The notes under the pieces are model-generated. The model ran no database searches and was not told the origin of the DNA. It saw only the letters and a list, made by a program, of their open reading frames with translations. Made by a program: the position numbers and the translations under genes. From assembly GCA_010909165.1 (NCBI GenBank), contig VJWM01000220.1, positions 124,001 to 188,000 on the forward strand: 64,000 nucleotides of DNA. Direction: 5' to 3'. Numbering within the stretch: the first letter of the stretch is position 1; each line of letters begins with the position of its first letter. This document shows, one piece after another, positions 13,296 to 62,122 of the stretch. Source of the stretch: Anthoceros angustus. Lineage: Eukaryota; Plantae; Anthocerotophyta.

Positions 13296-14130
13296 ATGCA
13301 CTTCGTGAACTTTCTGAGCTTGTTGCTCCTGACGGGAGTGGCCCTGGCAGCAGGGCTCCAGGATGCGCACCCAGCTCTCAGCTCCGAGACCGAGACCCCC
13401 CAGTACAGCGTGGTGCACACGGAGTCCGACTTCCAGATCCGGCTCTACAGGCGCAGTGTGTGGGCCTGTGCTACGGTCACCGATGCCTCCTTCCTTGCTG
13501 CCACGGTCAAGGGATTCCACAGGTCAGACCTCTTCTTCTTCAATCTCCGTCTTCTGCTTCTGCTTTAGCTTCGTCTTCGTCCTGGCCTTGAACCCGTGGG
13601 TGACTTGCCGTGTTGTGGTTATGGGCAGGTTGTTCCAGTACATCGAAGGAGCCAACTTGAATTGGTCGCACATCCCCATGACTGCGCCGGCGCTGACAGG
13701 CCTGAACCCCACAGCCGGGCCCTTCAGCTCCGCCGCCTACATCGTCCGGCTCTACCTGCCCACAGCCTTCCAGGATGTGCCGCCCACCCCAATCCCTGAG
13801 GTGGATGTGGGGTTCGAGCGCTGGCCTGAAGTGTGCATCGCCACCCGCACCTTCTCCGGCTTCGCCAAAGACAACAACGTCGCCAAGGAGGCAGCCTCCC
13901 TGGCTGCCAGCCTGGAGAGGAGCCCCTGGGCGAACGCCACTGTAGGTGCCCCTGTGCCTGGCAGGGACTCCTACGCCATCGCCCAGTACAGCGGGCCCTT
14001 CACCATTACCGGGAGAGTGAACGAGGTGTGGGTCACCCTGCCCGACTCCTTCCTCAAATACGGTTGCCAGGCTCCGGGAAATTCAGCCTCGGACTCTGCC
14101 TCTGCCTGTGAAGGAAAGTGTACAGTGTAG
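13296..14130 (+). CDS. SOUL/heme-binding family protein with signal peptide, 2 exons
   Basis: ETPQYSVVHTESDFQIRLY, GFHR|LFQYIEGANLNWSHIPMTAP, YAIAQYSGPF...RVNEVW; intron at about 13523-13629. Confidence 0.9.
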
Positions 14131-23697: not shown

Positions 23698-24784
23698 ATG
23701 GCCGCGAGCTTGTGCAAGCCGATTTTTCTATCTGCTTCGAGCCCTGTAAGCCCTGCTCTGGCATGCATCTTGTCCTTCGCCTTCCTGTGTTGTGCTCTCC
23801 TAACTCCACCGAGGACTCCGCCTGTGGCGCAGAAGGCTCCCCAGAGCTCGGCTGGTGCTGGCGTGAAGATCAGCGTGCAGGGATTGACTAGAAGAGCTGC
23901 AAATGGGTCCCCTCTTCTGGAGGGAGTCAGCCTACAGATCATGGCTGGTGAGGTGCACGGCCTTATCGGTCCCTCGGGGAGTGGCAAGACGACGGTCCTG
24001 CGGGCGCTGAACCGGATGTGGGGGCTGTGTTTTTCGATGGGCTTGACGTCACACAATTGGATGTGATCCAGTTGCGTCGACGGGTGGGCATGTTGTTCCA
24101 AGCAGCCTGCCTGTTTGATGGTGCAGAAACTGCTCTGGCAAGCACCTTTGAGTTCTGCCGCTGTTCACGACTTGGATTTGTTCCATTCCCACAACCATCA
24201 CCAGAGATGACATGCGTCTGAACGTGCAGGGACTGTGGCTGACAACGTACGGTACGGCCCAGCTTTGAGAGGCCTCCATTTGCCGGCCGAGGAGGTTCAA
24301 GAATTGCTGCTGCAGTCGGGATTTGGGGACCCCGCTGTCAGCTTCATGCACAAGGACGTGAAGGAGCTGTCTGGCGGTGAAGCTCAACGAGTTGCCCTCG
24401 CTAGAACTCTTGCCAACAAGCCAGAAGTCTTGCTGCTTGATGAGCCGACCAGCTCGTTGGATCAGGCAAGGCCGTCTCAACCAGGATGCTGCACTTGGCC
24501 TTGTTCTCAGTTATTGCATGTGAAACGAACTGACTCTCTTTTCCTGCCACCAGACAGCCACCACCTTGGTTGAAGACACCATCGCCAAGCTACAACGAGA
24601 GCAAGGATTGACCGTAGTCCTGGTTTCGCACAGCACGGAACAGGTCAGAAGGCTGGTCTCCAGAGCTACGCTGTTGAACAAGGGCACTGTGGTGGCTTCT
24701 GGCAACCTGTGGGAGCTGCAATCTAGTGACAATGTTCTCCTTGAGCAATATTTTGCTGGAAATTCTCTCGCGGAATACACTTAG
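23698..24784 (+). CDS. ABCI17: ABC transporter I family member 17 (STAR1/NAP3 NBD); frameshift near 24020; GC-AG intron 24466-24553; start uncertain
   Basis: [59 protein letters not shown]. Confidence 0.82.
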
Positions 24785-24823
24785 ACTCAAAGTCTTAGGA
24801 GGATAGAATCCTCCTTACACACG

Positions 24824-24932: not shown

Positions 24933-25719
24933 ACCTACGTGTTCCTCAACGCCCTTGAACGAGCGACCGACACCGTCTGTAGCATGCTGGAACAGAGAAT
25001 TTCCGTCAACAATCAGCTAAGCCAATGGGTATCTAGCTTCTAGTCTTCCCAATTCTCAAAATGGTCTATCCCGACAACTTTCCATCATGCCTCATGTATC
25101 TGAGGACTCTAGTAAATGCTTCCTCTTCTTCTAGACCCTTAAGAATTATTCATTATATACTTTTTAGACTATATATTTTGAGATTAAAAATATATATCTT
25201 TCAGTCCATCTTTTGTTCTGAAAACGCTTAACTAAAAATGCTTAATAGAATTGAGTTTGACTGTGGACATTTGGCTCTTTATATGGATATTTACTCCTTA
25301 TAGAATTCTATAAATCCGTTGTCCTGCAAGCGATGATTAGTCAAAGAAGATTAAATTCAAACTTTTTAGGTCATATGAAGGATCCATTTTATCTATTGTC
25401 ATGCAAGCAACGATTAGTCAAATTTAATACCAAAATAACTAAGGAGTTTGAATTCAAACGTTTTAGATCATATGAAGGATCCATTTTTGCTAAAAATTTG
25501 ATAAAGGATACGATCTATTTATTTTGCTCACAATCTACTTTTTACACATAAGTTTTTTGAAATTAGTAATCTTAGAATCATGAATCTTCAATAACCTTCA
25601 AAAGTAAGAGAGAAGAGACCACTAGATTAATATAATAAAATTACAAAATAAAAGCAACGAAGTACTAAGGTAGAATTTGTAACTCAAACAAATCTTTAGT
25701 GTGTCTGGATAGCAAAATC

Positions 25720-26001
25720 TGATGAAATATATCCAGTTTAGGGCACTATTCATTAGGGCCACATTACTTAAACATTATTTTATCATCTAGGGCATTAGGT
25801 AGTTATCTATTTAATTACTCTAGGTAGTTAGTAGTTATATTAGTTACAACAACTTGATGGTTATAACAATATGGGTTATAACAACATATTGTTATAACCA
25901 CCTAACCACCTCAACCACTTAGCCTATATAAAGGCTTGTACTTTACTCTTTAATTCAATCACATTGTAGCACTTCGTGCCTAAGAGCTATGATTCTCATC
26001 A
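25720..26001 (+). repeat. 5' LTR (282 bp, TG...CA) with TATA box
   Basis: Matches the 3' LTR apart from a 15-bp insertion and about 7 substitutions. Confidence 0.95.
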
Positions 26002-26013
26002 TGGTATCAGAGC
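26002..26013 (+). promoter_or_regulatory. Primer-binding site (initiator Met tRNA)
   Basis: TGGTATCAGAGC immediately after the LTR. Confidence 0.92.
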
Positions 26014-27712
26014 AAGTAGCTCTCTATGCTTGAGCCCTACACTCTCTACTGCCCAATGCTACTCTAGCTTTCTTCTATTGCTAATCATGTACCGTGGAGA
26101 TGTCTTCTTGGGCAGCAATCAAGTGTAGCATCAAGTTCTCTAAGGATGCGCAGCCTGTGCATCCATTTCCTTTTCGCTTTTACTGATTTTTGTCGAGCTC
26201 AAGGCATAGCTCAACAACTTCGATTGTATACACCTCGAAAAGCGTAGCGAGAATAAGAACTTACGCCTTCAAGAGATAACAGGTTGCTTGCTCTCCCAAT
26301 CAAAATTAACCAAATCATATTGGGCAGAAGCAATGGTTACAGCAACATATCTCATCAATAGAATGCCAACCTCAGCGGTTAAAGATATGACATCTTATGA
26401 AGCATTTACCGACAGAAAGTCTTCCGTAGATCATCTTCGGATTTTAGGCTGTACAGCTTATGTTTATATACCTAAAGCACAGCGCAGGAAATTAGATGAT
26501 AAGGCTGTCAAATATACTTTTATTGGCTACACTGAAGGCATTAAAGGATACAAATTATTTGATCTTGTTTCAAAGAGACTCATATACGCCAGAAGCATTA
26601 CTTTTCATGAGTCTCCAATACTATCTCCTTCAGTGGATTCTCCTGTTTTCGTTCCTGACGACAATCATCTGCCTTCGTCTTTTGATAATGACGAATTTAT
26701 TACCCTACATTCCACCCTTTCCTCTCCTCCGGTTGAACCTATATTGCAGGAGGAGGAGGAGCCATCTTCTCAAGGCGACCAACTACTCCATCCGGATATC
26801 GAAATTCCTCAACACCTTGAAGATCTTCCTGATATCCTGGACAATGAACTTTCTGAGCCTGAATATCTGGATGAAGATGAGCCGGTTCCTCCTATACATG
26901 AACCAGCTCCTGTAGAAGACGATAACACTTTAGAACAAGTCGTCAACGAAGATGTACAACCTGCACCAAGGTACAACCTAAGACCCAGACCTGCTGTCTC
27001 TGGACCTGCAGGATGGAAGGAACCACCTCTAGGATACCTTACTACTACTTTTGATGATCCCTCCTCACCTTTCTCCCATTTTCATCAAGCTGTTTACAAA
27101 GCCACAGTTGATCCTTAAGAGCCACTAACCTTGAAACAAGCCTTTTCCTCTCCTGAGAAAGACTTATGGAAAGCCGCAGTGGACTCTGAGTATGAGGGCC
27201 CCTGCAAAAAGAAGGCTTACTCGACCTCCATGGCAGAGAAGGTGATGCCGAGAGCAGTATCGAAGGATAATTAAACGCAAGGGTGATGGTTCCATTGAGA
27301 GATATAAGGCAAGACTAGTAGCCAGAGGTTTTACCCAAATACCGGGTTTAGATTACATACCTTGGGCTACTTATGCTCCAGTTGCAAAATTTTCTTCCTT
27401 AAGAATGATAATTGCCTTGACCACTCAACATGATTTACACCTTCACATGATGGATGTCAAAACTGCTTATTTGCAGAAGATTCTATTTCAATGGGGACTT
27501 AATAGGTTGAACCACCTGTTGCTCTTGCTAGAAGTCTCGCTATTAAATCTCAGTTAGTTGAGCCGGCACATATGAATCAGACGCATTCAAGAAGAAATAT
27601 ACATGAAACAACCTGAGGGTTATGAGGTCAAAGGCAAAGAAGATATGGTATGTAGACTAATCAAAGGTCTCTATGGCCTAAAGCAATCTGGAAAGGAATG
27701 GAACAAAGATAT

Positions 27713-29631
27713 ACATTATTTTATCATCTAGGGCATTAGGTAGTTATCTATTTAATTACTCTAGGTAGTTAGTAGTTATATTAGTTACAACAACTTGATG
27801 GTTATAACAATATGGGTTATAACAACATATTGTTATAACCACCTAACCACCTCAACCACTTAGCCTATATAAAGGCTTGTACTTTACTCTTTAATTCAAT
27901 CACATTGTAGCACTTCGTGCCTAAGAGCTATGATTCTCATCATGGTATCGAGCAAGTAGCTCTCTATGCTTGAGCCCTACACTCTCTACTGCCCAATGCT
28001 ACTCTAGCTTTCTTCTATTGCTAATCATGTACCGTGGAGATGTCTTCTTGGGCAGCAATCAAGTGTAGCATCAAGTTCTCTAAGGATGCGCAGCCTGTGC
28101 ATCCATTTCCTTTTCGCTTTTACTGATTTTTGTCGAGCTCAAGGCATAGCTCAACAACTTACAGTTGTATACACACCTCAGCAAAACGGCGTAGCAGAGA
28201 ATAAGAACTTACGCCTTCAAGAGATAACAGGTTGCTTGCTCTCCCAATCAAAATTAACCAAATCATATTGGGCAGAAGCAATGGTTACAGCAACATATCT
28301 CATCAATAGAATGCCAACCTCAGCGGTTAAAGATATGACATCTTATGAAGCATTTACCGACAGAAAGTCTTAGTAGATCATCTTGGATTTTAGGTCTGAC
28401 TTATGTTTATATACCTAAAGCACAGTAGAAATTAGATGATAAGGTCAAATATACTTTTATTGGCTACATCAAGGCATTAAAGGATACAAATTATTTGATC
28501 TTGTTTCAAAGAGACTCATATACGCCAAGCATTACTTTTCATGAGTCTCCAATACTATCTCCTTGATTGGATTCTCTGTTTTCGTTCGACGACAATCATC
28601 CGCTGCCTTTTGATAATGACGAATTTATTACCCTACATTCCACCCTTTCCTCTCCTCCGGTTGAACCTATATTGCAGGAGGAGGAGGAGCCATCTTCTCC
28701 AAGACGACCAACTACTCCAGATCCAGATATCGAAATTCCTCAACACCTTGAAGATCTTCCTGATATCCTGGACAATGAACTTTCTGAGCCTGAATATCTG
28801 GATGAAGATGAGCCGGTTCCTCCTATACATGAACCAGCTCCTGTAGAAGACGATAACACTTTAGAACAAGTCGTCAACGAAGATGTACAACCTGCACCAA
28901 GGTACAACCTAAGACCCGGACTGCTGTCTCGGACTGCGGGATGGAAGAACCACCTCTAGGATACCTTACTACTACTTTTGATGATCCCTCCTCACCTTTC
29001 TCCCATTTTCATCAAGCTGTTTACAAAGCCACAGTTGATCCTTAAGAGCCACTAACCTTGAAACAAGCCTTTTCCTCTCCTGAGAAAGACTTATGGAAAG
29101 CCGCAGTGGACTCTGAGTATGAGGGCCCCTGCAAAGAAGGCTTACTCGACCTCCATGGCGAGAAGGTGATGAGAGCGATGTCGAAGGATAATTAAGCAAG
29201 GGTGATGGTTCCATTGAGAGATATAAAGGCAAGACTAGTAGCGGAGGTTTTACCCAAATACCGGGTTTAGATTACATACCTTGGGCTACTTATGCTCCAG
29301 TTGCAAAATTTTCTTCCTTAAGAATGATAATTGCCTTGACCACTCAACATGATTTACACCTTCACATGATGGATGTCAAAACTGCTTATTTGCAGAAGAT
29401 TCTATTTCAATGGGGACTTAATAGGTTGAACCACCTGTTGCTCTTGCTAGAAGTCTGGCTATTAAATCTCAGTTAGTTGAGCCGGCACATATGAATCAGA
29501 CGCATTCAAGAAGAAATATACATGAAACAACCTGAGGGTTATGAGGTCAAAGGCAAAGAAGATATGGTATGTAGACTAATCAAAGGTCTCTATGGCCTAA
29601 AGCAATCTGGAAAGGAATGGAACAAAGATAT
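27713..29631 (+). repeat. Tandem duplicate of 25772-27712 (partial LTR, PBS, IN C-half, start of RT)
   Basis: Near-identical copy; junction at ACATTA microhomology. Confidence 0.9.
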
Positions 29632-30726
29632 ACATTACAAGCTTATTAAGTATGGCTTTATTCAAAGCAAAGCTGACGCAAGTATGTATATCTTAAAATC
29701 AAAACATCATACACTTTACCTCTTACTTTATGTGGATGACTTATTCTTAGCATCATCCTCACTCTCCCACCTAGCTGAAGTTAAAGCTTGGTTAAGAAGT
29801 CACTATGAAATGACGGACTTGGGAGAGCTAACCTATGCCCTTGGCGTCAATGTTATAAGGGATAGAGGTAATAAATCTATCAGCCTAGTTCAGACAAAAT
29901 ATATAAAAGAAAGTTTAGCCAAGTTTGGACTTGAAGACGCTAAACATGCTGCCACACCATTCCCTAGTGGCACACGGCTCACTTCTGACATGAGCCCTAA
30001 GACAAATACTGAAAAAGAAGAGATGTCAGCAGTACCATACAGACATGCTGTTGGTACATTAATATATTTAAGCAACTTCACTAGACCAGACATATCTTTT
30101 GAAGTTCGTGCAGTCTCACAATTTTTGGAGAATCCTGGAAGACAACATTGGCAATGCGTCAAATGCATATTCAGGTATCTCAAAGGGACTATGCACACTG
30201 GACTGATGTATAAGCATACACCCGGCATATCCAAGTTAAACTTAAGAGCATATGCTGATGCTAATTATGCTGGAGACCCAGACAGCCGAAATCTGTATCT
30301 GGCTACGTCTTACTACTTGGAGGAGCTCCCATCTCATGGTCAAGAAAGAAACAACCAACTATTGCTTTGTCAAGCACTGAGACAAAGTATAGGGTTCTAA
30401 CCTCAGTCTCCAAAGATATAGTCTGGAGTAGGTTAGCATTGAGTGAGCTGAACTATCCTCAAAATGAGCCCACACCCCTGTTCAGTGATAGTCAGGGAGC
30501 TATAGCTTTAGCCAGGAACCCTGTCTTCCACTCAAGGACTAAGCATATAGCAGTAGAATATTATCACATACGCGAGATATCAGAAAATAAAACAATAGAT
30601 ACAAATTACATCCAAACCCATGAGAATCCAACTGATCTGTTAACAAAGTCATTAGGGAGAGATTTGCATTCAAAGCATATGAAAATGTTAGGTATCCAAG
30701 AGGTCAAAACCAACTTAGCAAGCTAG
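29522..30726 (+). pseudogene. Copia RT C-terminal part and RNase H, frameshifted
   Basis: LYGLKQSG, LLYVDDL, TRPDISF, YADANYAGD, SDSQGAI, HSRTKHI. Confidence 0.92.
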
Positions 30727-31401
30727 CTAGTGGAGATAACTAAAAATCCTATAATCCACAAAGCTTGTCAAGCATTGAAAGTTCCTCTTCTAACTCTAAG
30801 TAGTCTTCACAGTACTCCTTAGCTTCTCTCTCTAATGCCCAAAAGGATCCTACAATAAACCCCAGAGGTTAAGTGATGAAATGATATAAACTAAAATGTC
30901 TTTCAATGTGAATCAAGAATCAAGGATACCATAATAGAAATCAAGGATTTGGGTCCATGTGAAGTCCATCCTGCTACGGTTCCAAATCACAATTGTATCT
31001 TGTTTGCAGCACGCCCTGATCGCCGTTTTTTTTAAACGGATTTTATTCCAGCCCGAGGCGCCACACCAGATGGGAGTGCGCCACACCAGATGGGAGGTCG
31101 AACCCGGATGGCTCGGGTGGTAGACACAGTTACTAACCACCATACCAAGGCAGCTTCTTATTTCACTATTGTTTTTAGTTAATTTATATACACTAGCTTA
31201 GATCCTTTACATCCTCATTAGTTGTAATATGCTTTGGTACTAATCAATCTTTTTATGTATTTTGATCTCAATGATGATAGTGATGACAGTGAAGCATTCA
31301 ATACATTGTTTGGCAATTTATTTGACACTTTAGAGATAAAAATTCCTGTAGAGTATTCTATATGGGATTTTTCTCCACAAGCTAAACAATCTAGATTAAA
31401 C

Positions 31402-33582
31402 ATGTCGGGATCTTCTTCTTTGCCTCCCGCTCTTCTCACTCCTCTTAGGATAGAATTTAAGGATAGAGATACATTTAATGGGACAGATTACACTATATGG
31501 GCAATGCGGGTGTCACAAATTTTAGAAGAAAATGAATTGATGGGGGTTGTAGACGGGTCTGAACCTACTCCTGCTCCAGGAGCCGCCCCTGATCTCATTT
31601 TGGAATGACAACGGAAGGATCGGCGTGCAAGAACTATTATTATTTCTGCTCTAGATCGGAATATGATGACACATACCTTGGGTGCTGCCACTTCAAGTGA
31701 TGTGTGGAATAACTTTAAGATGATTTATAAGGATAGGAGCTCAGCCTCCCTAGTACAAGCCTTCAGGAATTTTTAGTCTTCGTATGAAAGACAATGAGAC
31801 TGTGGAGTCTTATATCAGTGTTTCGCACTTGTCGTGCTAACCTTGCATATTGTGGAGCAGTTTAAGTGAAGTTCTGTCACCTACTTGCTACTCTTCCCAA
31901 GCATATCAATCTTTTGTAAGCGCACAAAGCGCCATTGTAAGGACGGCTAGTCAAACAACAGTTGCAGGTGCAACTCCAGCTATTACACTTCAGGAGGTGT
32001 TTGGAGCTCTTCTAGCAGAGGAGCGAACCCTTGGACTCAACAAAATGAAGGCTAGTTCAAGTGGTCAATCTAACTCTAGAATTTTGTTCACTTCTCGAGG
32101 CAGAGAGGGCTTTCGAGGATGTGGCAGGGGACGTGGTTTCCCCAACCAAAATTTTCAGCGTTCCACAAATAATCCACAGCAACACCAAAGAAAAGTTGTC
32201 ACTTGTTATTGGTGCAAGATACCCGGCCATATTGAGAAGGATTGCCGGAAGAAAAAGGCCGGTGAGCCTCGACGAGATACAAGTCTCCCTGAATCAAATG
32301 TCACAACAACAAAAGCTAAGTCACCCACAATCTTAGCTGTTTGTCTTTCATCTGTCCATTCTCAAGTAGAAACTTGGTTTTTAGATTCTGGAGCCACTAG
32401 TCATATTTGTTTTGACAGACACTCATTTAAAACTTTCTCACCCACATATGATGCCAATCAGTTTGTGCTTTTGGGTGATGACAATGGGCTTTCCATCAAA
32501 GGCTTGGGCTCAGTGGTCATACAGCTCCCAGACGAGTCTTCACTTATACTTTCTGGTGTTTTATTTGTCCCATCTATGACCAAAAATTTGATGTCAGTGA
32601 TTAAGTTGTCATAAGAACACTCTTGCCGAGTCTGCTTTGATCAATCTGGTTGCACTGTAACGCATGTTCCATCAAGTCAGGACCTTTTCATAGGCACCCC
32701 TTTTCATGATTTGTACTTGTTAGATGTCAAATCAATAGTGCAACCACAACCCACTCAATTTGTCAATGCCACTCAGAGGCCAGCGTTAATGCAACTTTGG
32801 CATTGTCGTCTAGCCCATGTTAATTTTCAGCATTTAGCATCTCTAACAAAGGGTGATAGTTTTCGAGATCCACTTACCTATCTCCTTCTAGTCACCTCGC
32901 GCTGTCGACAGTAAAGCCTTTCTAAGCCATACGGATCTCCACTCAACAAGGGCCTCGCCCTTTTGGATACTATTCATAGTGACATTTGTGGCCCTATGTC
33001 CACCACTCATTTGGAGGAGTTGTTTATTTTATTACATTCATAGATGAATGGAGCTATTGTATTGTTTATGTGTTAAGACATAAAAGTGAGGCTGAAAGAC
33101 ATGGATTGGCAAGACATGGATTTAGTCAATATTACCACTTTTATTTTCAGCACCGACTTGTTGGATTACCACGGATCCTAGCATATGAGCTTCGATTGCG
33201 ATTACATCCTCATCTTGACATGGGGAAGGAGGTGTTGCCCTCGCGAGCGGAGGCCGTTAATGCAACTTTGGCATTGTCGTCTAGCCCATGTTAATTTTCA
33301 GCATTTAGCATCTCTAACAAAGGGTGATAGTTTTCGAGATCCACTTACCTATCTCCCGTCTAGTCACCCCTTCTGTGACGCCTGTCAGCTTAGTAAAGCC
33401 TTTCTAAGCCACATACGGATCTCCACTCAACAAGGGCCTCTGCCCGTTTGCATACTATTCATAGTGACATTTGTGGCCCTATGTCCACCAGCTCATTTGG
33501 AGGAGTTGTTTATTTTATTACATTCATAGATGAATGGAGCCGCTGTTGTATTGTTTATGTGTTAAGACATAAAAGTGAGGCT
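31402..33582 (+). pseudogene. Copia gag, zinc knuckle, protease, GAG-pre-integrase and integrase N-half, with stops and a ~475-bp tandem duplication
   Basis: FNGTDYTIW, CYWCKIPGHIEKDC, WFLDSGATSH, LWHCRLAHVN, HSDICGPM, FIDEWS, LRHKSEA. Confidence 0.9.
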
Positions 33583-33904
33583 GAAAGACATGGATTGGCA
33601 AGACATGGATTTAGTCAATATTACCACTTTTATTTTCAGCACCGACTTGTTGGATTACCACTTCGGATCCTAGCATATGAGCTTCGATTGCGATTACATC
33701 CTCATCTTGACATGGGGAAGGAGGTGTTGCCCTCGCGGCGCACGGCATGATGCAACATGAGCCACCAGCACAGGTGCGAGGAGCTTGGGAGAGGGAATCT
33801 TCGCGGGCATACCTGCGAGACACATGCAGGTGGCCTGAAAGTGACGGGTTTTCTCCCGTGAGCGGAGCGGCCAGCCGAACGGCTGTACCGGACCCCCGAC
33901 GCGC

Positions 33905-33958
33905 CCACCAATGGCGCATCGGCCACCAATGGCGCATCGGCCACCAATGGCGCATCGG
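33905..33958. repeat. 18-bp tandem repeat x3
   Basis: ccaccaatggcgcatcgg three times. Confidence 0.9.
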
Positions 33959-34330
33959 GGGTGGTTGGGGCCGGATAAACCCGCAACCGGTTTATCCGCA
34001 AGTTATTTTCAATCATTCTTTTAAAAGGGACACTCAACAGGTCCCCCATCCCGGTACTGATCCGGGTATAGGATGCTTAACTGCGGAGCTTTGATGAAGC
34101 TCCGTGTAACAGCCCGGGGTATAGGATGGTTTTGCGGAGCTTTGATGAAGCTCCGTGTAGCAGCCCAGTAAGACCACACCACGAAATAACCATGTAAAGT
34201 TTTGGTATATTTACTTTTTCAGCTCTTAGTATCGGTTTATTTCTTTTTAAGCTTATAACTTTGAATTAAGTGGGAGCCTATTAATGTTTTAGACCTCATT
34301 TTAAAGCTAGAGTTCACCCCTACATTCATA

Positions 34331-34608
34331 GTGAGTGGGAGTGATGAAATATATCTAGTTTAGGGTACTATTCATTAGGGCCACATTACTTAAACATTAT
34401 TTTATCATCTAGGGCATTAGGTAGTTACCTATTTAGTTGCTCTAGGTAGTTAGTAGTTATATTAGTTACAACAACTTGGTGGTTATAACAACATATTGTT
34501 ATAACCACCTAACCACCTCAACCACTTAGCCTATATAAAGGCTTGTACTTTACTCTTTAATTCAATCACATTGTAGCACTTCGTGCCTAAGAGCTATGAT
34601 TCTCATTA
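34331..34608 (+). repeat. PPT followed by 3' LTR (267 bp; terminal CA mutated to TA)
   Basis: gtgagtgggag then tgatgaaat...tctcatta, followed by TSD aaatc. Confidence 0.93.
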
Positions 34609-35729
34609 AAATCTAGCTCGGTGACTCTCTGATTTTAGTTTTTCATTAGCGCTCTTTCCTTAATCCATTTTTTATAATCCAAATTTGAAATATCTATAAC
34701 TCAAATAAACAATCAACAACAATAGTTCATCCTTGAATTCTCGTATTGCACCCGTTAAATAGTCTTTGAATCGTCGCATGACACTTCTTTAGCTTGTATG
34801 GCTAAGAGTTGCTTGCAGCCATCGGAGACTGAAAAAAAATTCGGGTTTGAGAAGGACTTCTTGACAAGATTGTTCACTGAGTTTTTTAAGCAAAATCTCT
34901 TTGAAGTAGCAAACAGTGCACATGACAGTTTGGAAGTGATACTTGGTCTTAGTCTTCAGAAACCAAAGGGCATTCGTGTTCGCCGTAGGAACAAAATTAT
35001 TCTCATTGCCGGGAATTAAACCTTGGTAAAAATCAAATAACAAGTATGGACCAACTTAGCGTTCATACTTAAACCACTATACTACAACAAGTTTGTTATA
35101 CATTACGTCATGTATACACGCCTTGCTTGGCCAAACCCTGGCCCGTTCGGGCCATATTGGGGAACTATTTGTGTGGCGCGGCGCGCTTTGTCCAGCTTTG
35201 TTTTATTATTCTGTTTTGCTTTGTTCAACTACGAGCAAGTCACCATAGGAGCGTGTCTCAGCCATCTCCAAAACATTTTTTGCTGCTGCGGCCTTCATGT
35301 GCGTGATTTTCGGAGTGCTGATCGAGTGCAACATAGGGGCCGCTAATTTCTTTTAGCTCGATGAGGAACAATTTTGGATGCGGCAGCAAAATCGAAATCT
35401 TGCTTCAACCCTCCGCCCTGAGACCTGCGATTTTTTCTTGGTGAAGGATTTTGTTTGAGCCCGCCGCAAATAAAGGTCCACTTCTCTCCTTGTCTTGTGC
35501 GTTGTGTGCTTCACTTCATATTTAGTATCTAATTCTCAAGTGATATGTGGATGTTTACATGACAACTTTATTTACATAAGACTATAAGTGCGAACGAAGT
35601 ACATTGGTACGTGGAATTTATCTACGCGGAAATTTATCGTTGATCGTATGTGTACTAGTCTGCCACACAATCAATGATAAGGTCGGAACAACTAAAATAT
35701 GATAATTGTTAACAAGACTATACAAGAAC

Positions 35730-36180: not shown

Positions 36181-36840
36181 CTTGTGCGTTGATGCACAGA
36201 GGTAGTTCATTAGATGAAGCGAGAGAAAAAGATGGGGCCCTTCACAAAATGGATCTGCCATGACAACAAGCTTCTATCTACACTTTCCTAACCGGGTTCA
36301 TAAAACTTGGCCCCATGTGCAAAGTGGAGAACTCACAATCCGTGCCGCACATGCGAAGCCCTCCCTGAGTGGTTGCCACTAGTGGACGCGTGGCAGGAAA
36401 GCCCTCCGTCCTCCAGCGCAATCGGAGGACACCTGTCTCTACACCCACCGCCTATATCCCGCATCTCAGTCCAGGATGCGGAAAGGTGGCCAATGCAGAG
36501 TTGGAAGGCGCTGCCATGACGACGATTGCGATCTGGAGATATGGCACAATGGTTAGCGGGGAGATGAGAGGCAAGCAGGCCAAGTCTGGTAAATAGGCAA
36601 GATGAGGGAAGGGCAGGCACGGAAAACTAGAGATCAGGTAGTAAAGACCCTGATTTGGCAAGCAAGTTCATGCACATACTAGAGTGAGAGGTTCTCGGGG
36701 ACATGCCCCGAGGTGGACCTTGTAACTGTGAGACAAGTAGTAGTCTCTCATCGGATCTTACTTTTCTTAGAGAAGTCTGCAAGAAACAGTGGGACCGATA
36801 ATTATGGGCAAGAGACAAACCAATGATAGTGCAATTTTAA

Positions 36841-38324
36841 TCACTAAACGTCCAAGAGTTTCGGATCGAGACTTTGAACCTATTTTTTCTACCGTAACTA
36901 ATTCATAGAAATTTAAAAATTTACTATTGATTAACCCCATGCTGAGGTTTCAAAAATTGGCAACCTTGAAGGCCATTGAATCGCCTTGGAATGGGAGCAG
37001 AGGGGCATGGCAACGGCGATGAGGCATTGCGAGCTGGAAAAGAAACAAAGTGCGAGGTTGAACTGCGGCGAGCAAAGAGAGTGGTATGGTCCGGCCACGG
37101 TCCCGCCACTTAGCCGGTGCCATGGACCTGCCCAGCAGGTGGGTCCACTCTCTCTCTTCACTGGCCTTGAATGACCGTTCTGGTTTTAGAATTGCATAAC
37201 CACTGAATTGGCTGTTGCCCATGATTGTCGATCCCATTGTTGCTTGCACACATTTTCATGAAAGGTAAGATCCAATGAGAGATTGCCACTTGTCTCGCCC
37301 TTACAAGTCCACCTCGGCTAGCGACGTGCTACCACTTCCCGACTCCACCTTGGAGGTGTAGTGCACTGCTTGTTGTTCGGGAGTTTCTATACCTATTCCA
37401 TGTGAAATGGGCCTCTGACCGTGCAAGTGCAGCGAGCACGAGGAGTGTAGGAGAGCCAGAGGCTGGAGGACGGTGTCCTCGTGGGCTCCGGGTATGCACG
37501 TGAGATCCGTAGTGAGTGGCAGGAGAGAGAATCCGGCCATGTCCACTAATGACAGCGACCTAGTAGGGAGGGGCTTCGCATGCGCGGCACGAAAGGGCCT
37601 CGCCGTTTCTCTTGGTGTATCTGATGAACTATCAATCAATTTTCCTTGGATTTCTCGCGGTGATTGGCAGTGATCTTTCAGCATTTCCAATTGTATTTTT
37701 TACCTGAGCCCGTGGCTGGAATAGTTCGAAAGACCCCAAAGAAGGGCATCCCGACCGAAACTCCGGGAGGTTCCTTTCACATTGGAAACTACAATTCTAC
37801 TTCAATGAAGGCAACCAAAGGCTTGTTGGAAAGCCTGCATAGAGCTTGGCACTACTCTAATTAATCTATGATCACAACATTTACAGAAAATCAGAAACCA
37901 CAATGCTTGAATTTCTCGGAAAATAGGGATAGTTGTGTAGGGGTTAAAACCGGAATGGCAAGTCAAGGCCACTGAAGAGAGAGAGTGAACCCCTCTGCTA
38001 GGCGGGACCAGGGCATCGGCTAGATGGGGAGACCACGGCCGGACCATGCCACTCCCCTTGCTCGCCGCAGTTCTGCGCCGTGCTCCGTTTCTTTCCCAGC
38101 CAGCCATGCATTGTCGTCGATGGCATGGGTCTTCTACTCCCTATCCTAGGCCATTCAATGGCCTTCAAAGTTATCAATTTCGGAAACCTGGGCATGGGTA
38201 GATGCGCCTTTTCGCGGTCGACTAAATCCGATCATTCATAGAAAAATTCTAAATTTTTATGAATTAATTACGATATGAAAAATAAGTCCAAAGTCTCGAT
38301 CCGAGACGTTTTGTCGTTTAGTGG
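36841..38324. mobile_element. Non-autonomous DNA transposon with ~340-bp diverged TIRs, flanked by TTAA
   Basis: 36841-~37185 is the reverse complement of ~37945-38324; ends (T/C)CACTAAACG...CGTTTAGTGG; TTAA on both sides. Confidence 0.8.
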
Positions 38325-38724
38325 TTAACTGCGGAATTCTCAAGGTTTCCAACGGCAAGCTCCGCGACGCCCAAAACGCTCACCCACGGGTAACCTACGA
38401 CGGTGTTCCCAACTCTTGTCCAGTCTTGAGCAGTCTTACAAAATGAAATTGTTGCAGGGTAGGCAGAACGCGCATTGGCGTCTCGTCCCTAATAGAATAT
38501 CCCGTCGCAAGGGAAGAGCCTAACTGCAGGGAAGCAGCCGCAAAAGATGCTCTCCCGAGAGTTCGTAAATCAAAGGCTACAACCACTGGCCAATATCATC
38601 GCACGCCAAACTAGAGGAGTTAGTGTAGGAATGAGCTAGAAGCTGCTTTAGTAGGAAGCATGCCGAGGCTTTTTCCAGTCAACAAAGTATAGCCACCAGG
38701 ATTGCTCAACCTGTCGCCTATATT

Positions 38725-38850
38725 CTCCACAGGAGCCTAACCGCTGTTGAGCTGTAGCATCTGGCAACCTGTGGGAGCTGCAACCTAGTAACAACGTTCT
38801 CCTTGAGCAACATTTTGCTGGTCAGAGTGTCAGCGATTACACTTAGACTC
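38725..38850 (+). pseudogene. Diverged duplicate of the ABCI17 last exon
   Basis: tctggcaacctgtgggagctgcaa...ttctccttgagcaa...tacacttagactc matches 24698-24788. Confidence 0.88.
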
Positions 38851-39069
38851 GAAAATTGAGCCTTAACGAAGATGGCATCCTCTGTGAAATAGGTGAGGGA
38901 TTCAGGGAAATTGGGGGGATTGGGAATGGGGTGCATCGAGCATGGCTTTGGATGACCGGATACAGAATGTATGTTCCTCATCGAAATCGCGTCTGAGGCC
39001 TTCCTTCATTTCACAATGACAGCAGGCAAGCGGAAAAAAGCTCACAGCAGCTAGTAATCTTCTCTCTCA

Positions 39070-51619: not shown

Positions 51620-51845
51620 AGCTCGTTTAACAGGGCTGAAACCGAGACCCAGGAGTTTTGCAGAGTGGAAGTGAAAGTCGATGAACATGTTTCTCTGTGG
51701 ACCGAGAAGATAGAACATGACCTGAGGAGACCTGAGGCGGTAGCGGTGGTTAGCTGGGCCATGCGGTCGCCGCCTCTTCCGGTGTGGTAGCGAGCAGGAT
51801 GCAGATGGTCGATGAGGCCCTTGGCGAGACCGATGACCTCATTCA
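51620..51845 (-). pseudogene. Fragment duplicating the 2OGD 3' exon
   Basis: VIGLAKGLIDHLHPARYH...RMAQLTT versus VIGPAEELIDSLHPARYH...RIGQLTT. Confidence 0.82.
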
Positions 51846-52196
51846 TCAATGTCTTCCAGCTTTGAAGCACACATATGTAAACAAGTTTCAGACTTTCAAA
51901 ACAAACCACTACGCAGAAAACATTGCAAACGACTCTCGAGGTTGTGCAAGATTGAAAGTTCTGGTGAGGAGCACAAATGTTCAATATCTGAGTTTCAGGG
52001 GAGCTCAATTGGCAATGCTTTCGAGACACTTCCAAGCTAAATATCCCAGTTGCTGAGCATGCACAGGCCTACAGGCTGCGTATGACTGTTACACAATACA
52101 CATACGTGTATGTGAAGTATTGACAAGGCTAGCTCACCTAAGGTAATTCAAGGCCTGGTAGCGAATGCGTCACAAAGATCCCTACCTCCTGGAGCG

Positions 52197-53111
52197 TCAC
52201 TGATCTTCTGGAGGGAAGATGTCGGTGAGCAAGGTCTCCGAAGTGGCCCCAATGGATGCCTGCAACAATTGCAAAGCCTGCAGAAGGGCAGACTGGCAGG
52301 ATTAGGAACATAGTGTCCATACAACAAGCTAGATACACCTAGGTCATGTGAAGGTTCTCGAAACCTCAACCACAATGCTATCGACAAGTATGGTAAACAT
52401 AAGATAGCCTTACAGTCGAATGAAACAGATACTGAATTCAAAGGCGCATTTGACTACCTGCTTCGAACTAACCCGGGCTTGGCAAGTCTCCAGGTCGCCC
52501 AGCGATTGCACGTTGAGCTGGGCCAACAAAAGGGTGATGTTTGCGGTGGAGGCTTGCGTGATACGCAAGGTATTTGTGATCATGTAGGTGCCGTTTCCCT
52601 CCACAAATCCTTGACCTTCATTCTCAAAACTGTGATAAATAGTGCATCTGTTACGTTTGAACGTCCTGCCATTGCATGCATTGCAAGTAGCCGGATCCAT
52701 GTAGCTCGCACTGAGCACCTTGCGGCAGTCGTGGTTGCAATGGTAGAAGGTCTTTGCTTGAATGCACTGGTCATTTTTCCAAGTGCCGTTGATAAAACGT
52801 CCAACAGCGCTGGGAAGATCCGCGCAGACAGGATGATCCAGTACCTGCCTGACAGCTCCGTTCCCAAGGAAGGATTTGCTCGGGAGGTTGAGCACACTGG
52901 CGAAGATGTTCGTCATGGCTGTGCCGGGCCCCCTCTTGTCTTCTCCCAGCTTCGGAACCAGGTTCAAGATTGTGCTTGTGGAAAGGGTGAGAAAGCTGAA
53001 AAGCAGGTCCACGAATTCCTTTCCGGCTTCCATGTACAAAACTGACCTGCTCGTTTTGTGTCTCGTCAGAGTGACTTCCCAGTACGTCTCACTGTCAGCA
53101 AACTGCGCCAT
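52197..53111 (-). CDS. DUF674 family protein, copy 1 (2 exons)
   Basis: VLYMEAGKEFVDLLFSFLTL, GFVEGNGTYMITNTL, exon 2 ALQLLQASIG...LLTDIF. Confidence 0.85.
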
Positions 53112-54248
53112 TTCCTCGTTCGGATCTCCCCGGGAGTGCTCAATTTCACGCCGCTGGCTTGCAAGTAATTGGAAGCGGTAATTGCGCAGGACTAGACCGC
53201 AGACCGGCTCAGCTCCTCAACATAGGAAGAAGAGACGCTGAAGGGAGAGGGAAGTTTGAAATCGTACGACGCAGCGTAAGCTTGTGCCTTGGCTTTACCG
53301 TTATGATTTAGTGGTTGAGGCCGTTAGCGGCAGGTGCGTTCACTACACTGATTCATGAGAGTGAAGTCTGTACAGGCAGGCAGAGTCTTTGAATATCCAG
53401 GAAAGCTCTTGTGCTAACTGTTACCATCAATACCCCTAACTAACACATCTCGTCCATTGGAATCTGAAACGTGCCTTCGTGTCTACGTCGTTGCAATGGT
53501 TTCTAACATTTACGCTACCTTCTAGCGTACAAGGCTTTTTCGTCACCGACTACCTAGTACGAGATGTACATTGCAGAGTCCAGCAGTCTGGCTGGAGTTG
53601 GTTTTCAAACAGGCCTCGTGATTCTGGAGAGCAACAGTGATCGATGGGTTCATGGAAGGCAACACTGACAAAGGGAGGAATAATCTTCCTAGGTTTCTGC
53701 GGGCTTGATCAGCACTTTTACACATGCACCCTGCAGGTAATTCCACGGCTGCGAATAATGTTTCAGGTTTTGCAGTTCGTACAAGTTTCGCACCATGCCT
53801 GCGGAAGTCTGATTGAAAACCAAGAGGTGCGATTAAGTTTGATTGAAAAGCCTGCCATTACAGGAACATAGTTTTACATTCCAGATGAGTACGATCGTCG
53901 GATGACCTCATTCATGAATGTCTTCCAGATTGTGACCCATACATACGTGTTAACAAGTTTCAGGCTTTCAAGAAAACCACAGTGCAGAAAGCAACTGGTG
54001 CAAAAGACTCTCGTTGGTTCAATTTTAGGCGACAATAGAAGCTCTGGCGCGAGGAGCACAGTTTCAAGCAGAGATTGGATCAATTGGCAATGCTTTCACG
54101 AAATTTGCAAGCTGAATATCCCAGCTGCTGAGCACTGGCTTCCTGCAGGCTGTGTATGACTGTTACACATCACATATGTGAAGGATTGAAAATGCTAGCT
54201 CACCTAGCCTCCAGCGAATTTAAGGCCTGGTTCTTAACTACGAAAGGC

Positions 54249-55150
54249 TCAAGGGAGAGCACTCTCTGGAGGAAAGATGTCGCTGAGCAGTGTATCAGAG
54301 GTGGCCCCAATGGATGCCTCCAGTAATTGCAAAGCCTGCAGAAGGGCACACACTGGCAGGATTAAGAACGTACAGTCGAGACAGCAGTTGAGTCACATAC
54401 ATGTAGACATGTAATTGGGCTTCTGGAAATACCCCGACCACAATGCTAGATATCAACAGGCATGTACACGTACGATACCCATGCAGTCGATTGAGGAAGA
54501 TACTGGAAGCTTACCTGCTTCCAACCAACCTGGACTTCGCATGCCTCTACGTCAGTCCAGGACAGCACGTTGAGCTGGACGAGCAAAAGCATGACATTTG
54601 CAGCGGAGGCTCGCTTGATACGCAAGTCATTTGTGATTATGTAGCCTAAGGTGCCTCCCGCCACAAATCCATCACCTGTATTTCCACAACTGTAGAAAAC
54701 AGTGCTTGTCCGAACATCGGACTGGCTAGGTTTGCGTACAGTGCAAGTGGCCTGATTCATGCCCAAACGGAATCCTCTGCAGTTGCACTCGAATCTGTTG
54801 TTCACTTGACTTGCAGCTCGCCGATTATAGATAAAACGCTCAACATCCTTGGGAAGCTCCGCGCAGACAGGTTGACCCAGTAACTGCATGGAAGATTCCT
54901 CCTTCACGAAGTCTTTCAACGCTAGCCTTTCCACACTGTCGAGGATGTTGGACATGGCTGTGGCGGGCCTCTTCCTTTCTTCTCCCAGCTCTGTAATAAG
55001 TTGCAAGACTCTGCTTGTCGGAAGAGTGAGGAAGCTGAAGAGCAGATCCACGAATTCCTTTCTGGCTTCCATGTACAAAACTGACTTGCTCCTTCTGTGT
55101 CTTATCAAAGCCACTTGCCAGCGCGCCCCACAGTCTACATCCAACGACAT
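54249..55150 (-). CDS. DUF674 family protein, copy 2 (2 exons)
   Basis: VLYMEARKEFVDLLFSFLTLP, GFVAGG, YIITNDL, exon 2 ALQLLEASIG...LLSDIF. Confidence 0.85.
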
Positions 55151-55959
55151 TTTCTCGTTCGGATCTCCCTGGGAGTGCTCACGATCACGCCGCTGGCTTG
55201 CAAGCAATTGCTAGTGGTAATTGCCCAGGAAGAGAATAGCAGACCGGCTCAGCTGTCAGGGATAAGAAGAAGAGACGGAGATGGGAGAGGGAAGTTTGAA
55301 CTCGTACGACACAGCGTAAGCTTCCGCGTTCACATTTACTGATATGATTTAGTGGTTTAGGCAGTTAGAAGCAGGTGTGTTCCGTTAAGGACAGCTGTAT
55401 TCATCGCAGGGAAGTCTGTACCCTGGTACAGGCAGTCAGACAAGGCATTATGGATGTCAAGGGATGGATCTTGTGGTAAATGTTTCAATGGTTTCTAGAA
55501 CATTTATGCTCACTTACAGCGTCCAAAGGCAATTTCATCACCAAATCATGCTAGGAACTGTAAACTGGATTGTGCGGCAGTCTGGCCGGAGTTGGTTTTC
55601 AAGCAGGCTTTTAATGCTGAACAGCAGCAAGGATCCATCTTTCATGGAAGGCAGGCTTGACGAAGTGAGTTCATCTTCCTAGGGCTCTGCTGTCTCGATG
55701 GATACAGCGACATACATATGTACAAATGCACCCTGCAGGCATCGACAAAAATTAGGGGTAAACAATTGTTTCAGGGTTTCTACTAGGTGAACTCACTCTC
55801 GAAAAGTGCCCGAATTACGCACAAACAAGAAAGACTCTCGACGGTTCCCTTTCCGCGAGATTGAAAGGTGTGTTGAGGAGCACAAATGGTTCAAGATGAA
55901 AGTTTCAGGGAGAGCTCAATCGGCTGGTGAACACTGGATTGAAAAGGCTAGCTCACCCA

Positions 55960-56125
55960 GCTAGCGCCTCCTCTTGTCTTCTCCCAGCTCTTCGATAAGC
56001 TTCAAGATTGTGATTGCCGGAAGAGTGAGGAAGCTGGAGAGCAGATGCACGAATCCCGTTCCGGCTTCCATGTACAATACTGACTAGTTGCTCGTTTCGT
56101 GTCTCGCCAGAGTGACTTGCCAGTG
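55960..56125 (-). pseudogene. Truncated third DUF674 copy
   Basis: Homologous to the 5' coding part of copies 1 and 2 (ccggcttccatgtacaa, gagtgaggaagctg), fused to duplicated downstream sequence. Confidence 0.78.
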
Positions 56126-57249
56126 CGTCACAGGAAGGCGTCAGGCTCGCTTCCAAGTGTGAGAAGGGATAGGACCTTTGATTTACCTGCATGCCATGCC
56201 GCTCTTCGCCCCCTCCTCCGCCCGTCCTCCGGGTTGATGGAGCTACTGTATTATGCCATGGGCATCGGGCATGGCATGGCGGTTCCTCAGGCCGTACTGA
56301 CGAACCAGGTGTCGCCGGGACCGTGTCCCTTCCTTCATACTTTTTTTTTATCGAGTGAGCTCGAAAGCGCGAGAGTCAATCTTTTGTAAAGCTAAAGGTA
56401 AAGGCTCGCAAGCATTGCAAGTCAGTCGTGCTGCGTGAACTCGAAGCATGTCTGGCAAAGGATTTCCGCTGCTTGGCCTCGCCGTTGCTCTTGGTTGTGT
56501 GTGTTGTAGTTTTGTCTCGGGAGCTGATCCTGAAATATCGGGCTATGGGTACGAGGTGGGAGGAACGCAACTCTGGGACATCAATGTTTCTCCAGTTCCC
56601 AAAACCTCTCCAGAATTGGGCTAACCAGTACAAGTTTTCGGGAGACCAACTCCGTAAGCGTTTCGTTTCCTCAACATTCATGATATACCAGTTGGCTGCG
56701 TTTGGCATCGTCTTCTAATATTGCTCCAGACTCACCCACGGTACCATACTGATTGAATTCCAAGGGTTTGCAAGTGCTTTGCAGTTCCACAACTCTGTTC
56801 CTGCATCTGGTGAGTTATCTGGAGTGGAGTGGAAGGTTTTAACATCCATATGGTGTATACCTTTCACGTGTTTTTCCCTTCTTATTTTGAAAGACGAAAG
56901 TTTATGTCTGTTGCTACCATGAAAGGAACGATGAAGCATGTTGAGTAGTGCTGTGGTACAGGTGCAGGTATTGCCCTTGCTTCAATGGTCATCGTGAATG
57001 CTCTCTGAACTTTGCCGAAGCATAGCACTGACCGGTCCTGAACCTGAAGTCAGTGGTGCTTAAAGTAGAGAAATGTAGTGTGGGAAGTCCTTCATTTTCC
57101 GGATCCTCTCTCCGGATACATGTCCTGTGAGGTCAAGAGCAAATCTGCAACCTGCCATACCTGGACGCAAATTTTGGCACCAAGCGCGCCTCCCAAATGT
57201 CCCCACTTTTGGGATGAGACTGTAGGTAATATCTACCTAATAATGTTTA

Positions 57250-60400: not shown

Positions 60401-62122
60401 CCACTCCGTCGATCAGGACCTCCCCTGCCTGGGGGTCGTAGAATCTCTCCAGCAGCGCAATCGCAGTGGATTTTCCAGACCCGCTGCTGCCCACCAGAGC
60501 CACATTCATCCCCGCCGCTACCCGCAGGCTGAAGCCCTGCAGAACCGGCACATCCGGGCGGGACGGGTAGCAGAAGCTCACGTCCCTGAACTCTATCCGC
60601 CCTTGAATGTCCTCCAAAATGTCCCCGCTGAGATCATTGGACTCGATGAGCGGCTGCCGATTTATCACTTGGAAGATGCGCTGCCCTGCGTGAGCTCCTT
60701 CTCCGAAGGCTCGGATGCTGGGAGTGGCCTGCCCCAGAGATCTGCCACACACAACACATACATCCATCAACTCGTGAGCTCACCGGTCGTGACCATGACA
60801 GCACCCAGACGAGTTGCAACCCACATGGCAGAGTTGATGATCAAAAAGCCGGTGAGGACGACGTCGGCACCGTTGGCCTGATGCCTCGACACCAGCCTCT
60901 GCCCCACTAGGCTCATCACGGCCCAGACCAGGTACGAGAATCCCGACGAGGCGAGAGCGAAGCCTTTGGCCAGCCCCTGCTTCGATCCCAGCTGCATTGT
61001 CCCGGCGAGGGCGGCAACGAAGGATTCCACAGTCCGTTCCTCCGCGGCGAAGGAATACACAGTCCTGATGGAGGATACCGACTCCTCTGCTATCACGTTC
61101 GCCTTGTCATACTCCTTCCGGATCTTGGCGGTCATGTCTGTCAAGGCCGCTTTGTACATGAATCCTGGTACCAGCACCACTGGCGTTAAGGTGAGCGCTA
61201 CCAGAGCCAGCTCCCAGCAGATGTAGAAACCCACCACGTAGGCAATCAGAAGCTGCACCGAATTGGCTAGCATGTTTCCCACCTGCAACTCACAAACACC
61301 ATGCATTGTTCTCAGCCTCATCCTCGAGCCCACGACACAGGATTGTGCACCATTTTCGAGATGACATTGTGTGAACTTATCATGGAGGTGAACTTTGGAA
61401 GCATACCTTCTCACTCATGGCGTCCTGGATGGCTTCGCTGTCCTTTGCCACACTGGTAACCACTTCCGAAGTGGTGGTTCCCTTGCCATCGAAGAAGCCC
61501 ACCTCCTGCCTCAAGATGGCTCCCAGATACTTGGCCCTGATGAGTGACGACTGCCTCTCCCCTACTCTTATCCAGCAGCTCACTTCTGCAACAGCTCATC
61601 ACAACAACGCAAGCTTGCCAATCATTGATCCTATCACCAACATGAAGGCAGGCACACAGGTCTCCCGAATCTAGGATAATCGTCCCACTTACCCAGATAG
61701 CCAAAAAACGCTGCAGCAATCGCGACAAACACCATGTACAAACAGTACTGCGCACACATGCAAGTGACAGGCCTTCGGGTTAGGTCCGACTCTGCAGACT
61801 GTAAGTCCAAGCTTGAAAGCAAGAGATTGTTGTATCCAGGGAAACCTGGGGGCAATAACAGGCGTACTTTGCCCACTTGTCGTGCTAGTTCAGACGGGTC
61901 GTTCTGGAGGTTTCCGAACTTGTTGATCAGGACCCTCAACACCAAGACAATGAGGGGCACCACTGCCCCTTCTCCAACCGCTCCAACGATGCCCAACAGG
62001 ATCACCACCTTGTCGTGCATGTCAGCATACTGGAACAGATGAAGGTATCTCGCTCTGCCCGCAGGCTTACCAGATTCACCACCTTCACCCACATCTCCCT
62101 CTCCGCATCCCGAGGACACCAT
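57499..62122 (-). CDS. ABCB: Full-size ABCB (P-glycoprotein/MDR) transporter, ABCB15-like; 1-nt frameshift at about 58165; start could also be 62182
   Basis: Two TMD-NBD halves; GSSGSGKST and GQSGSGKST; [14 protein letters not shown] and [14 protein letters not shown]; [10 protein letters not shown] twice. Confidence 0.93.

Follow-up and report, generated by a model that had tools for sequence, protein, structure and literature searches.

A Ty1/copia long terminal repeat (LTR) retrotransposon with a permuted interior lies at 25720-34608 of a 64,000-nt stretch of Anthoceros angustus contig VJWM01000220.1 (the window, in whose numbering all positions are given). In the assembled sequence, the integrase (IN) C-half, reverse transcriptase (RT) and RNase H (RH) regions stand ahead of gag, protease (PR) and the integrase N-half, and the whole is enclosed by one set of intact element ends. 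The locus looks like a one-off wreck or an assembly error. It does not count as evidence that a permuted family transposes, nor that a dimer has lost its central LTR. Its origin is tentatively put down to one rearrangement in place, after a single integration, with local duplications following.

The LTR inventory was taken from a self-comparison of 24-36.5 kb, and the outer frame of the element consists of the following features.

25715-25719, + strand: left target-site duplication (TSD) AAATC, identical to the pentamer at 34609-34613
25720-26001, + strand: 5' LTR (LTR1), TG...CA, with a TATA-like box near 25925; 92.9% identical to LTR3
26002-26013, + strand: primer binding site (PBS) TGGTATCAGAGC, directly adjoining the end of LTR1
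34330-34341, + strand: polypurine tract (PPT) AGTGAGTGGGAG, purine-rich, directly before LTR3
34342-34608, + strand: 3' LTR (LTR3); relative to LTR1, 15 bp are deleted at an 11-nt direct repeat
34609-34613, + strand: right TSD AAATC

The sequence TGGTATCAGAGC matches a PBS of the initiator tRNA-Met type. All the end features that characterize Ty1/copia elements are present, namely an LTR pair, a 5-bp TSD, a PBS by the 5' LTR and a PPT by the 3' LTR. LTR1 and LTR3 differ over their aligned length by six substitutions, mostly transitions, and one 15-bp insertion/deletion (indel); the terminal CA of LTR3 reads TA. A match of AAATC at the fixed element ends has a chance probability of approximately 1 in 1,000. 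The outer frame is a genuine single insertion, given the matching 5-bp TSD, an LTR pair with transition-type divergence, and a PBS and PPT that are both in place. A single insertion event had also been proposed in the original prediction, which was made from the sequence before any searches, and this part of it is upheld. The divergence of LTR1 and LTR3 (approximately 2.2%, six substitutions in 267 bp) corresponds to roughly one million years if change proceeds as in rice, at an assumed 1.3e-8 per site per year.

Domains were called with Pfam on open pieces and by tblastn with five canonical copia polyproteins, using P0037 as the residue reference. The interior is built from three main parts.

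26014-26175, + strand: non-coding leader (U5a), 162 bp, with swap junction J1 at its right end; no Pfam or tblastn signal
28116-30726, + strand: block B, comprising the integrase C-half, RT (RVT_2) and the RNase H region to the stop; aligns to P0037 residues 523-1295
31403-33093, + strand: block A, comprising gag (DUF4219, Retrotran_gag_2), zinc knuckle, protease (Pol_BBD), gag_pre-integrs and the integrase N-half ending KSEA

Read from the left, the leader is followed by the IN C-half (SH3_retrovirus), which begins at AFTDFC (26176), and by RT as far as RVT_2 profile position 137. A partial LTR (LTR2), a PBS and a repeat of the leader and IN C-half (from 28116) then lead into a full RT and the RH region, which closes with the pol stop codon at 30724-30726. 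After a 676-bp spacer, gag starts with an ATG at 31403, and Pfam and tblastn place zf-CCHC, Pol_BBD, gag_pre-integrs and the N-part of rve, with the first catalytic Asp, behind it. The integrase N-half ends KSEA at 33093 and is followed by 157 bp of non-element DNA; the IN N-half (KSEA at 33582) and the same 157 bp then recur, before further non-element DNA, the PPT and LTR3. The domain complement is Copia-type (Retrotran_gag_2, gag_pre-integrs, rve and RVT_2, the rve match with an E value of 0.008 lying below the Pfam cut-off). The locus shares with canonical plant Ty1/copia elements its TG...CA LTRs, tRNA-iMet-type PBS, PPT and 5-bp TSD, as well as Retrotran_gag_2, zf-CCHC, Pol_BBD, gag_pre-integrs, rve, SH3_retrovirus and RVT_2 domains. 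In contrast to the canonical gag-PR-IN-RT-RH order in one polyprotein, however, IN-C, RT and RH here precede gag, PR and IN-N, the integrase core is split, and a third, partial LTR is present. The permuted order is read as marking a damaged member of Ty1/copia, and not another family.

The two integrase halves fit together closely. In the alignment to P0037, IN-N stops at residue 489 and IN-C begins at residue 523, leaving exactly 33 residues (99 bp) absent, and these include DNGGE with the second catalytic Asp. No trace of the missing codons was found in any frame of the leader or of the DNA after KSEA. As a comparison of lineage between the two blocks, their scores against 50-70 distant polyproteins were rank-correlated; the correlation between IN-N and IN-C (rho 0.29) is too weak to be informative. 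The original prediction had described a permuted layout, complementary and non-overlapping integrase halves, a gap of about 30-35 residues containing the second catalytic Asp, and about 160 bp of non-coding DNA after the PBS. Each of these holds for the assembled sequence: Pfam and tblastn agree on the order, the P0037 residues define the halves and the gap, and the non-coding stretch is the 162-bp leader.

The same prediction counted two LTRs and overlooked two tandem duplications. Its overall layout therefore stands for the domain order, the ends and the integrase split, and not for the LTR inventory: three copies are present, the third being partial and carried by a 1,941-bp tandem duplication.

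25769-27709, + strand: tandem duplication 1, first copy, with LTR positions 50 to end, PBS, leader, J1, IN C-half (SH3_retrovirus) and RT to RVT_2 profile position 137
27710-29637, + strand: tandem duplication 1, second copy, with partial LTR2, PBS with a 1-bp gap, leader, J1 and IN-C from 28116
27710-27942, + strand: LTR2, partial, lacking the first 49 nt
32784-33249, + strand: tandem duplication 2, first copy, with the IN N-half and 157 bp of non-element DNA, J3 at 33093/33094
33255-33740, + strand: tandem duplication 2, second copy, with J3 again at 33582/33583

Both duplications (1,941 bp and approximately 480 bp) are head-to-tail. At the junction of duplication 1, mid-RT is joined to LTR position 50 at a shared ACATTA microhomology (8/9 nt). 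Its copies show only two isolated substitutions in 1.9 kb, one of them inside the junction microhomology, and otherwise differ at 15 short patches of clustered, deletion-biased small indels. In each inspected patch, bases and reading frame are lost from one copy, and a conserved motif is preserved in its partner; this pattern is the signature of consensus error and not of evolution. The copies of duplication 2 have no isolated substitutions. Over 240 nt, LTR2 matches LTR1 without a difference, and it carries all the LTR1 differences from LTR3. Because the copies are nearly substitution-free, compared with six substitutions between LTR1 and LTR3, the duplications are either far younger than the insertion, by at least an order of magnitude, or technical. 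Since each of them contains a swap junction, they came after the swap. Both fall within 9 kb that form the only repeat-derived part of the window, and no further near-zero-age duplications were found elsewhere in its 64 kb.

Two schemes that would place the duplicated structure in reverse transcription were rejected. A three-LTR element produced in this way would have a complete central LTR and LTRs of equal age, whereas LTR2 lacks 49 nt and shows no differences from LTR1 against six substitutions and an indel relative to LTR3. A reverse-transcription origin of the 1.94-kb duplication itself is ruled out by the equality of LTR2 with LTR1, not LTR3, and by copies without substitutions. Complex three-LTR elements arising from template switching in reverse transcription have been described (Sabot and Schulman 2007, PMC1950507), as have pre-integration recombinants in rice (bioRxiv 10.1101/452573). 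In these (PMC1950507; bioRxiv 10.1101/452573), as at the present locus, one TSD encloses more than two LTRs and internal sequence that is present in duplicate. The locus differs in its middle LTR, which is without the first 49 nt, meets mid-RT at a 6-nt microhomology and matches LTR1 exactly, whereas LTR3 has diverged; the duplication therefore post-dates integration. Models for such elements, moreover, do not permute domains, as has happened here.

Other lesions add to the damage. In both copies of duplication 1, RT is interrupted between RVT_2 profile positions 89 and 92 by a 108-bp insert with stops (27477-27584 and 29396-29503), which shows neither GT-AG borders nor any match in the rest of the window. 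The IN-RT linker contains an in-frame TAA in both copies of duplication 1 (27116-27118 and 29043-29045), and this stop, being common to both, is older than duplication 1. With an integrase split and deprived of its second catalytic Asp, an RT broken by the 108-bp insert and an in-frame TAA, the element copy is dead; given the last two lesions, it would be so even without the swap.

The spacer between RH and gag is where a central LTR would be expected if two units had once stood in tandem, and it holds the following features.

30727-31402, + strand: spacer from the pol stop to the gag ATG, 676 bp, containing J2 at some point; similarity to LTR, PBS or PPT does not exceed chance
31026-31154, - strand: tRNA-derived insert resembling a short interspersed nuclear element (SINE), with box A- and box B-like motifs and an A8 tail; read by eye

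An 11-mer at 30872, AGTGATGAAAT, equals the PPT/LTR junction. The original prediction took this faint copy for the trace of a lost central LTR; the 11-mer does exist, but the best local alignment of the spacer scores 24 to the LTR/PPT region and 25 to the LTR1/PBS/leader region, below the 95th percentile of shuffles (27). Self-BLAST on both strands and local alignment against shuffles revealed no LTR remnant at the RH/gag junction, and a central LTR remnant in the spacer was rejected, its alignment falling below the shuffled controls. The SINE-like insert has a 19-nt internal repeat (31058 and 31078) and is without a clear TSD; ARAGORN and Rfam scans of the spacer and of the filler DNA after IN-N returned no match, and did not call this insert.

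Non-element DNA also occupies most of the interval upstream of the PPT.

33583-34329, + strand: non-element, partly GC-rich, internally repetitive DNA between IN-N and the PPT

This filler has no protein match and no DNA match anywhere in the window. Its repeats include an 18-bp unit present three times (33905-33958) and a 53-bp unit present twice (34064-34166), the latter containing a short hairpin, and its antisense open reading frames (ORFs) give low-complexity, unconvincing translations. A 15-bp tandem repeat (a 12-mer at 15-nt offset) directly follows KSEA at 33096-33125 and 33585-33614. The pre-gag stretch and the non-element DNA after IN-N have in common a 12-mer, TTACATCCTCAT, with flanking partial matches (31207, 33202 and 33694); the alignment score of this region equals the 95th percentile of shuffles. 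When the assembled junctions J1 to J3 were compared, no shared k-mer of at least 10 nt was found.

The favoured explanation, rearrangement in place, would run as follows. One Ty1/copia element of an undescribed family integrated once, as the 5-bp TSD shows, and its LTRs later diverged by approximately 2.2%. The integrated copy would then have suffered three breaks, one each in the leader and the integrase core and one downstream of the pol stop, and its pieces would have been rejoined out of order, putting the segment from the IN C-half through RT to RH ahead of that from the leader remainder through gag and PR to the IN N-half. Joining may have occurred by end joining with filler DNA or by replicative template switching, and would have left the LTRs and TSD untouched. 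A single shared break in the integrase core would have lost approximately 100 bp (33 codons), which accounts for the complementary halves, and two later tandem duplications (1,941 bp and approximately 480 bp) would have copied stretches that already held swap junctions. For two adjacent blocks with a breakpoint in common, three breaks and a misjoining are the simplest route to a swap. Two of the three swap junctions carry non-element filler, and filler insertion is common in plant end joining. By our own arithmetic, two independent breakpoints in an interior of approximately 5 kb would fall within 100 bp of each other in only about 4% of cases. The lengths are likewise accounted for. LTRs, the 162-bp leader, approximately 250 bp ahead of gag and approximately 0.45 kb of 3' non-coding DNA, together with 1.69 kb from gag to IN-N, 2.61 kb from IN-C to the stop and the missing 0.1 kb, total approximately 5.8 kb. 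Adding 1.94 kb, 0.48 kb and approximately 0.75 kb of filler and subtracting 0.1 kb gives the observed 8.9 kb. The content is therefore that of one element, not two.

Several points weigh against this explanation. It lacks parsimony, with three breaks and two later duplications at one locus, the swap is placed after integration by inference, and two near-zero-age duplications in one 9-kb element, with none elsewhere in 64 kb, are an unlikely biological coincidence. The junctions are read from the assembled consensus, and the assembly is noisy: duplication 1 has 15 indel patches between its copies, each with a frame broken in one copy and kept in the other, and an ABCB19-like gene in the window also has frame breaks. 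Given the near-zero-age duplications and the heavy consensus noise, assembly artefact is a serious rival, rated only somewhat below the favoured explanation. Under it, the real locus would be an ordinary collinear old copia element, and the swap and duplications would be due to chimeric or misplaced noisy long reads, to small contigs put in the wrong order or to the closing of gaps. Long-read assemblies do contain false duplications and local errors of order, and the locus is like them in having near-identical adjacent copies, in a repeat of a noisy assembly, that differ only by independent, deletion-biased indel patches of the kind typical of consensus error. That both duplications are of near-zero age and fall in the one repeat-derived region of the window, and that frames are broken in a conserved gene of the same window, further favour an artefact. 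The gene is the following.

58146-61414, - strand: ABCB19-like ABC transporter gene, collinear with PDB entry 8woi_A residues 161-1065

Its pieces map to 8woi_A residues 161-309, 311-497, 492-803 and 870-1065, and its frame breaks (60767-60770 and 60119-60132) resemble indel noise. The gene is nevertheless collinear over approximately 900 residues, and the window is therefore not scrambled everywhere. The junctions, too, are unlike those of known mis-assemblies, in that they join non-homologous positions: overlap-based misassembly joins homologous ones and would not bring the leader up against the middle of integrase. Every part of the polyprotein occurs once, with the halves abutting to within 33 codons, unlike the product of a random walk. 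Non-element DNA follows IN-N in both copies of duplication 2, which a merely mis-ordered canonical element could not show. Finally, the errors are found now in one copy of a duplication and now in the other, with the conserved motif preserved in its partner, which means that the consensus derives from two copies called separately.

Origins before integration, or from more than one unit, are less probable. Non-homologous RT template switches between co-packaged RNAs, possibly including broken genomic RNA, could have produced a permuted cDNA with normal ends that integrated as a unit, perhaps as a member of a non-autonomous family mobilized in trans. The ends would have been competent, the LTR, PBS, PPT and TSD being intact, junction filler could be captured host RNA, and complex LTR elements with retained TSDs are known products of template switching (PMC1950507; bioRxiv 10.1101/452573). 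This route is nonetheless improbable, as three non-homologous switches would be required in one cycle, the coincident integrase breakpoints are not explained by it, and the SINE-like filler is antisense, opposite to the copying of a co-packaged SINE RNA. No second copy is known from the window or from the protein and metagenome collections, and the duplications cannot share such an origin, because LTR2 equals LTR1 rather than LTR3 and because they are much more recent than the divergence of the LTRs. A circle opened at a new point gives a circularly permuted interior. On this reading, an interior copy, circular or concatemeric, would have been cut open within the integrase gene and taken up again between the element's own LTR ends, as an example of a genome-wide scrambling process that uses microhomology. 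Excision of an interior circle, re-opening in integrase and recapture are topologically the same as the three-break model, and as a history in its own right this is given little credence. The locus shares a circularly permuted interior with products of LTR circles and auto-integration, but no LTR stands at the closure point, the integrase breakpoints do not adjoin LTR ends, and 99 bp are lost where 5 bp would be duplicated. Auto-integration in its classical form, which the original prediction had offered, thus does not fit: the PBS and 162-bp leader precede IN-C, and non-element DNA follows IN-N. The collapsed tandem dimer and circular intermediate (as a 1-LTR circle) that it also proposed are weakened by the lack of an LTR remnant between RH and gag. 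A tandem dimer (LTR-I-LTR-I-LTR) or nested same-family pair would have to be cut by three deletions: one from gag through IN-N in the first unit, one of the central LTR, and one from IN-C through RH in the second unit. It is well established (see also PMC1950507) that plant LTR elements commonly decay into complex forms with three LTRs and by deletions that arise from illegitimate recombination, and the 11-mer in the spacer would fit. This is, however, the least probable of the histories considered, since that 11-mer aligns below shuffled controls in a spacer with no other LTR, PBS or leader homology, two independent deletions would have to end within 100 bp in element coordinates (approximately 4%), one deletion edge would have to fall exactly at a unit boundary, and an LTR would have to be gone with no remnant left.

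Close relatives of the element were not found. BLAST on both strands detected no other copies within the window. The best match to the gag-PR piece is 42% identical (among 5.8 billion proteins) and that to the RT piece 48% (among cluster representatives). An exact look-up of the element's ORFs gave no match, a 24-mer spanning the LTR end and PBS had no matches in metagenome contigs, and an RT-based locus search returned only relatives that are at most 48% identical. To judge from these comparisons, with the closest proteins no more than 48% identical, the copia family here appears to be undescribed.

The flanking genes are plant-type (SOUL, DUF674, 2OG-dioxygenase N-domain and ABCB). An intact SOUL heme-binding ORF lies at 13363-14130; its best public relatives are only 52-69% identical, and the host lineage is therefore poorly represented in the protein collection. 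Together with the 42-48% found for the element's proteins, these values fit a land-plant lineage that has been sampled little. The DUF674 gene, on the minus strand, is present as two to three diverged tandem copies (51832-56129, 73-82% identical, spacing approximately 2,040 bp). The copia element is bracketed by a direct repeat of approximately 100 bp (84% identical, 24692-24791 and 38754-38854, 14 kb apart), which could represent the ends of an older host element. Between the element and the right-hand repeat lies an inverted repeat, fold-back or resembling a miniature inverted-repeat transposable element, with arms of approximately 250-350 bp (78-82% complementary, 36837-37188 and 37945-38328) and a 756-bp gap between the core arms.

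Whichever explanation applies, the locus does not demonstrate that a retrotransposon can work with a permuted gene order. If the layout is an artefact, permuted and tandem transposon structures in this assembly should not be taken at face value. If it is real, it represents a natural three-break rearrangement inside a transposon with intact ends. Taken with similar cases, should they occur elsewhere in the genome, it might then suggest that rearrangement through microhomology, or the re-insertion of circles, is unusually active in this bryophyte-like plant.

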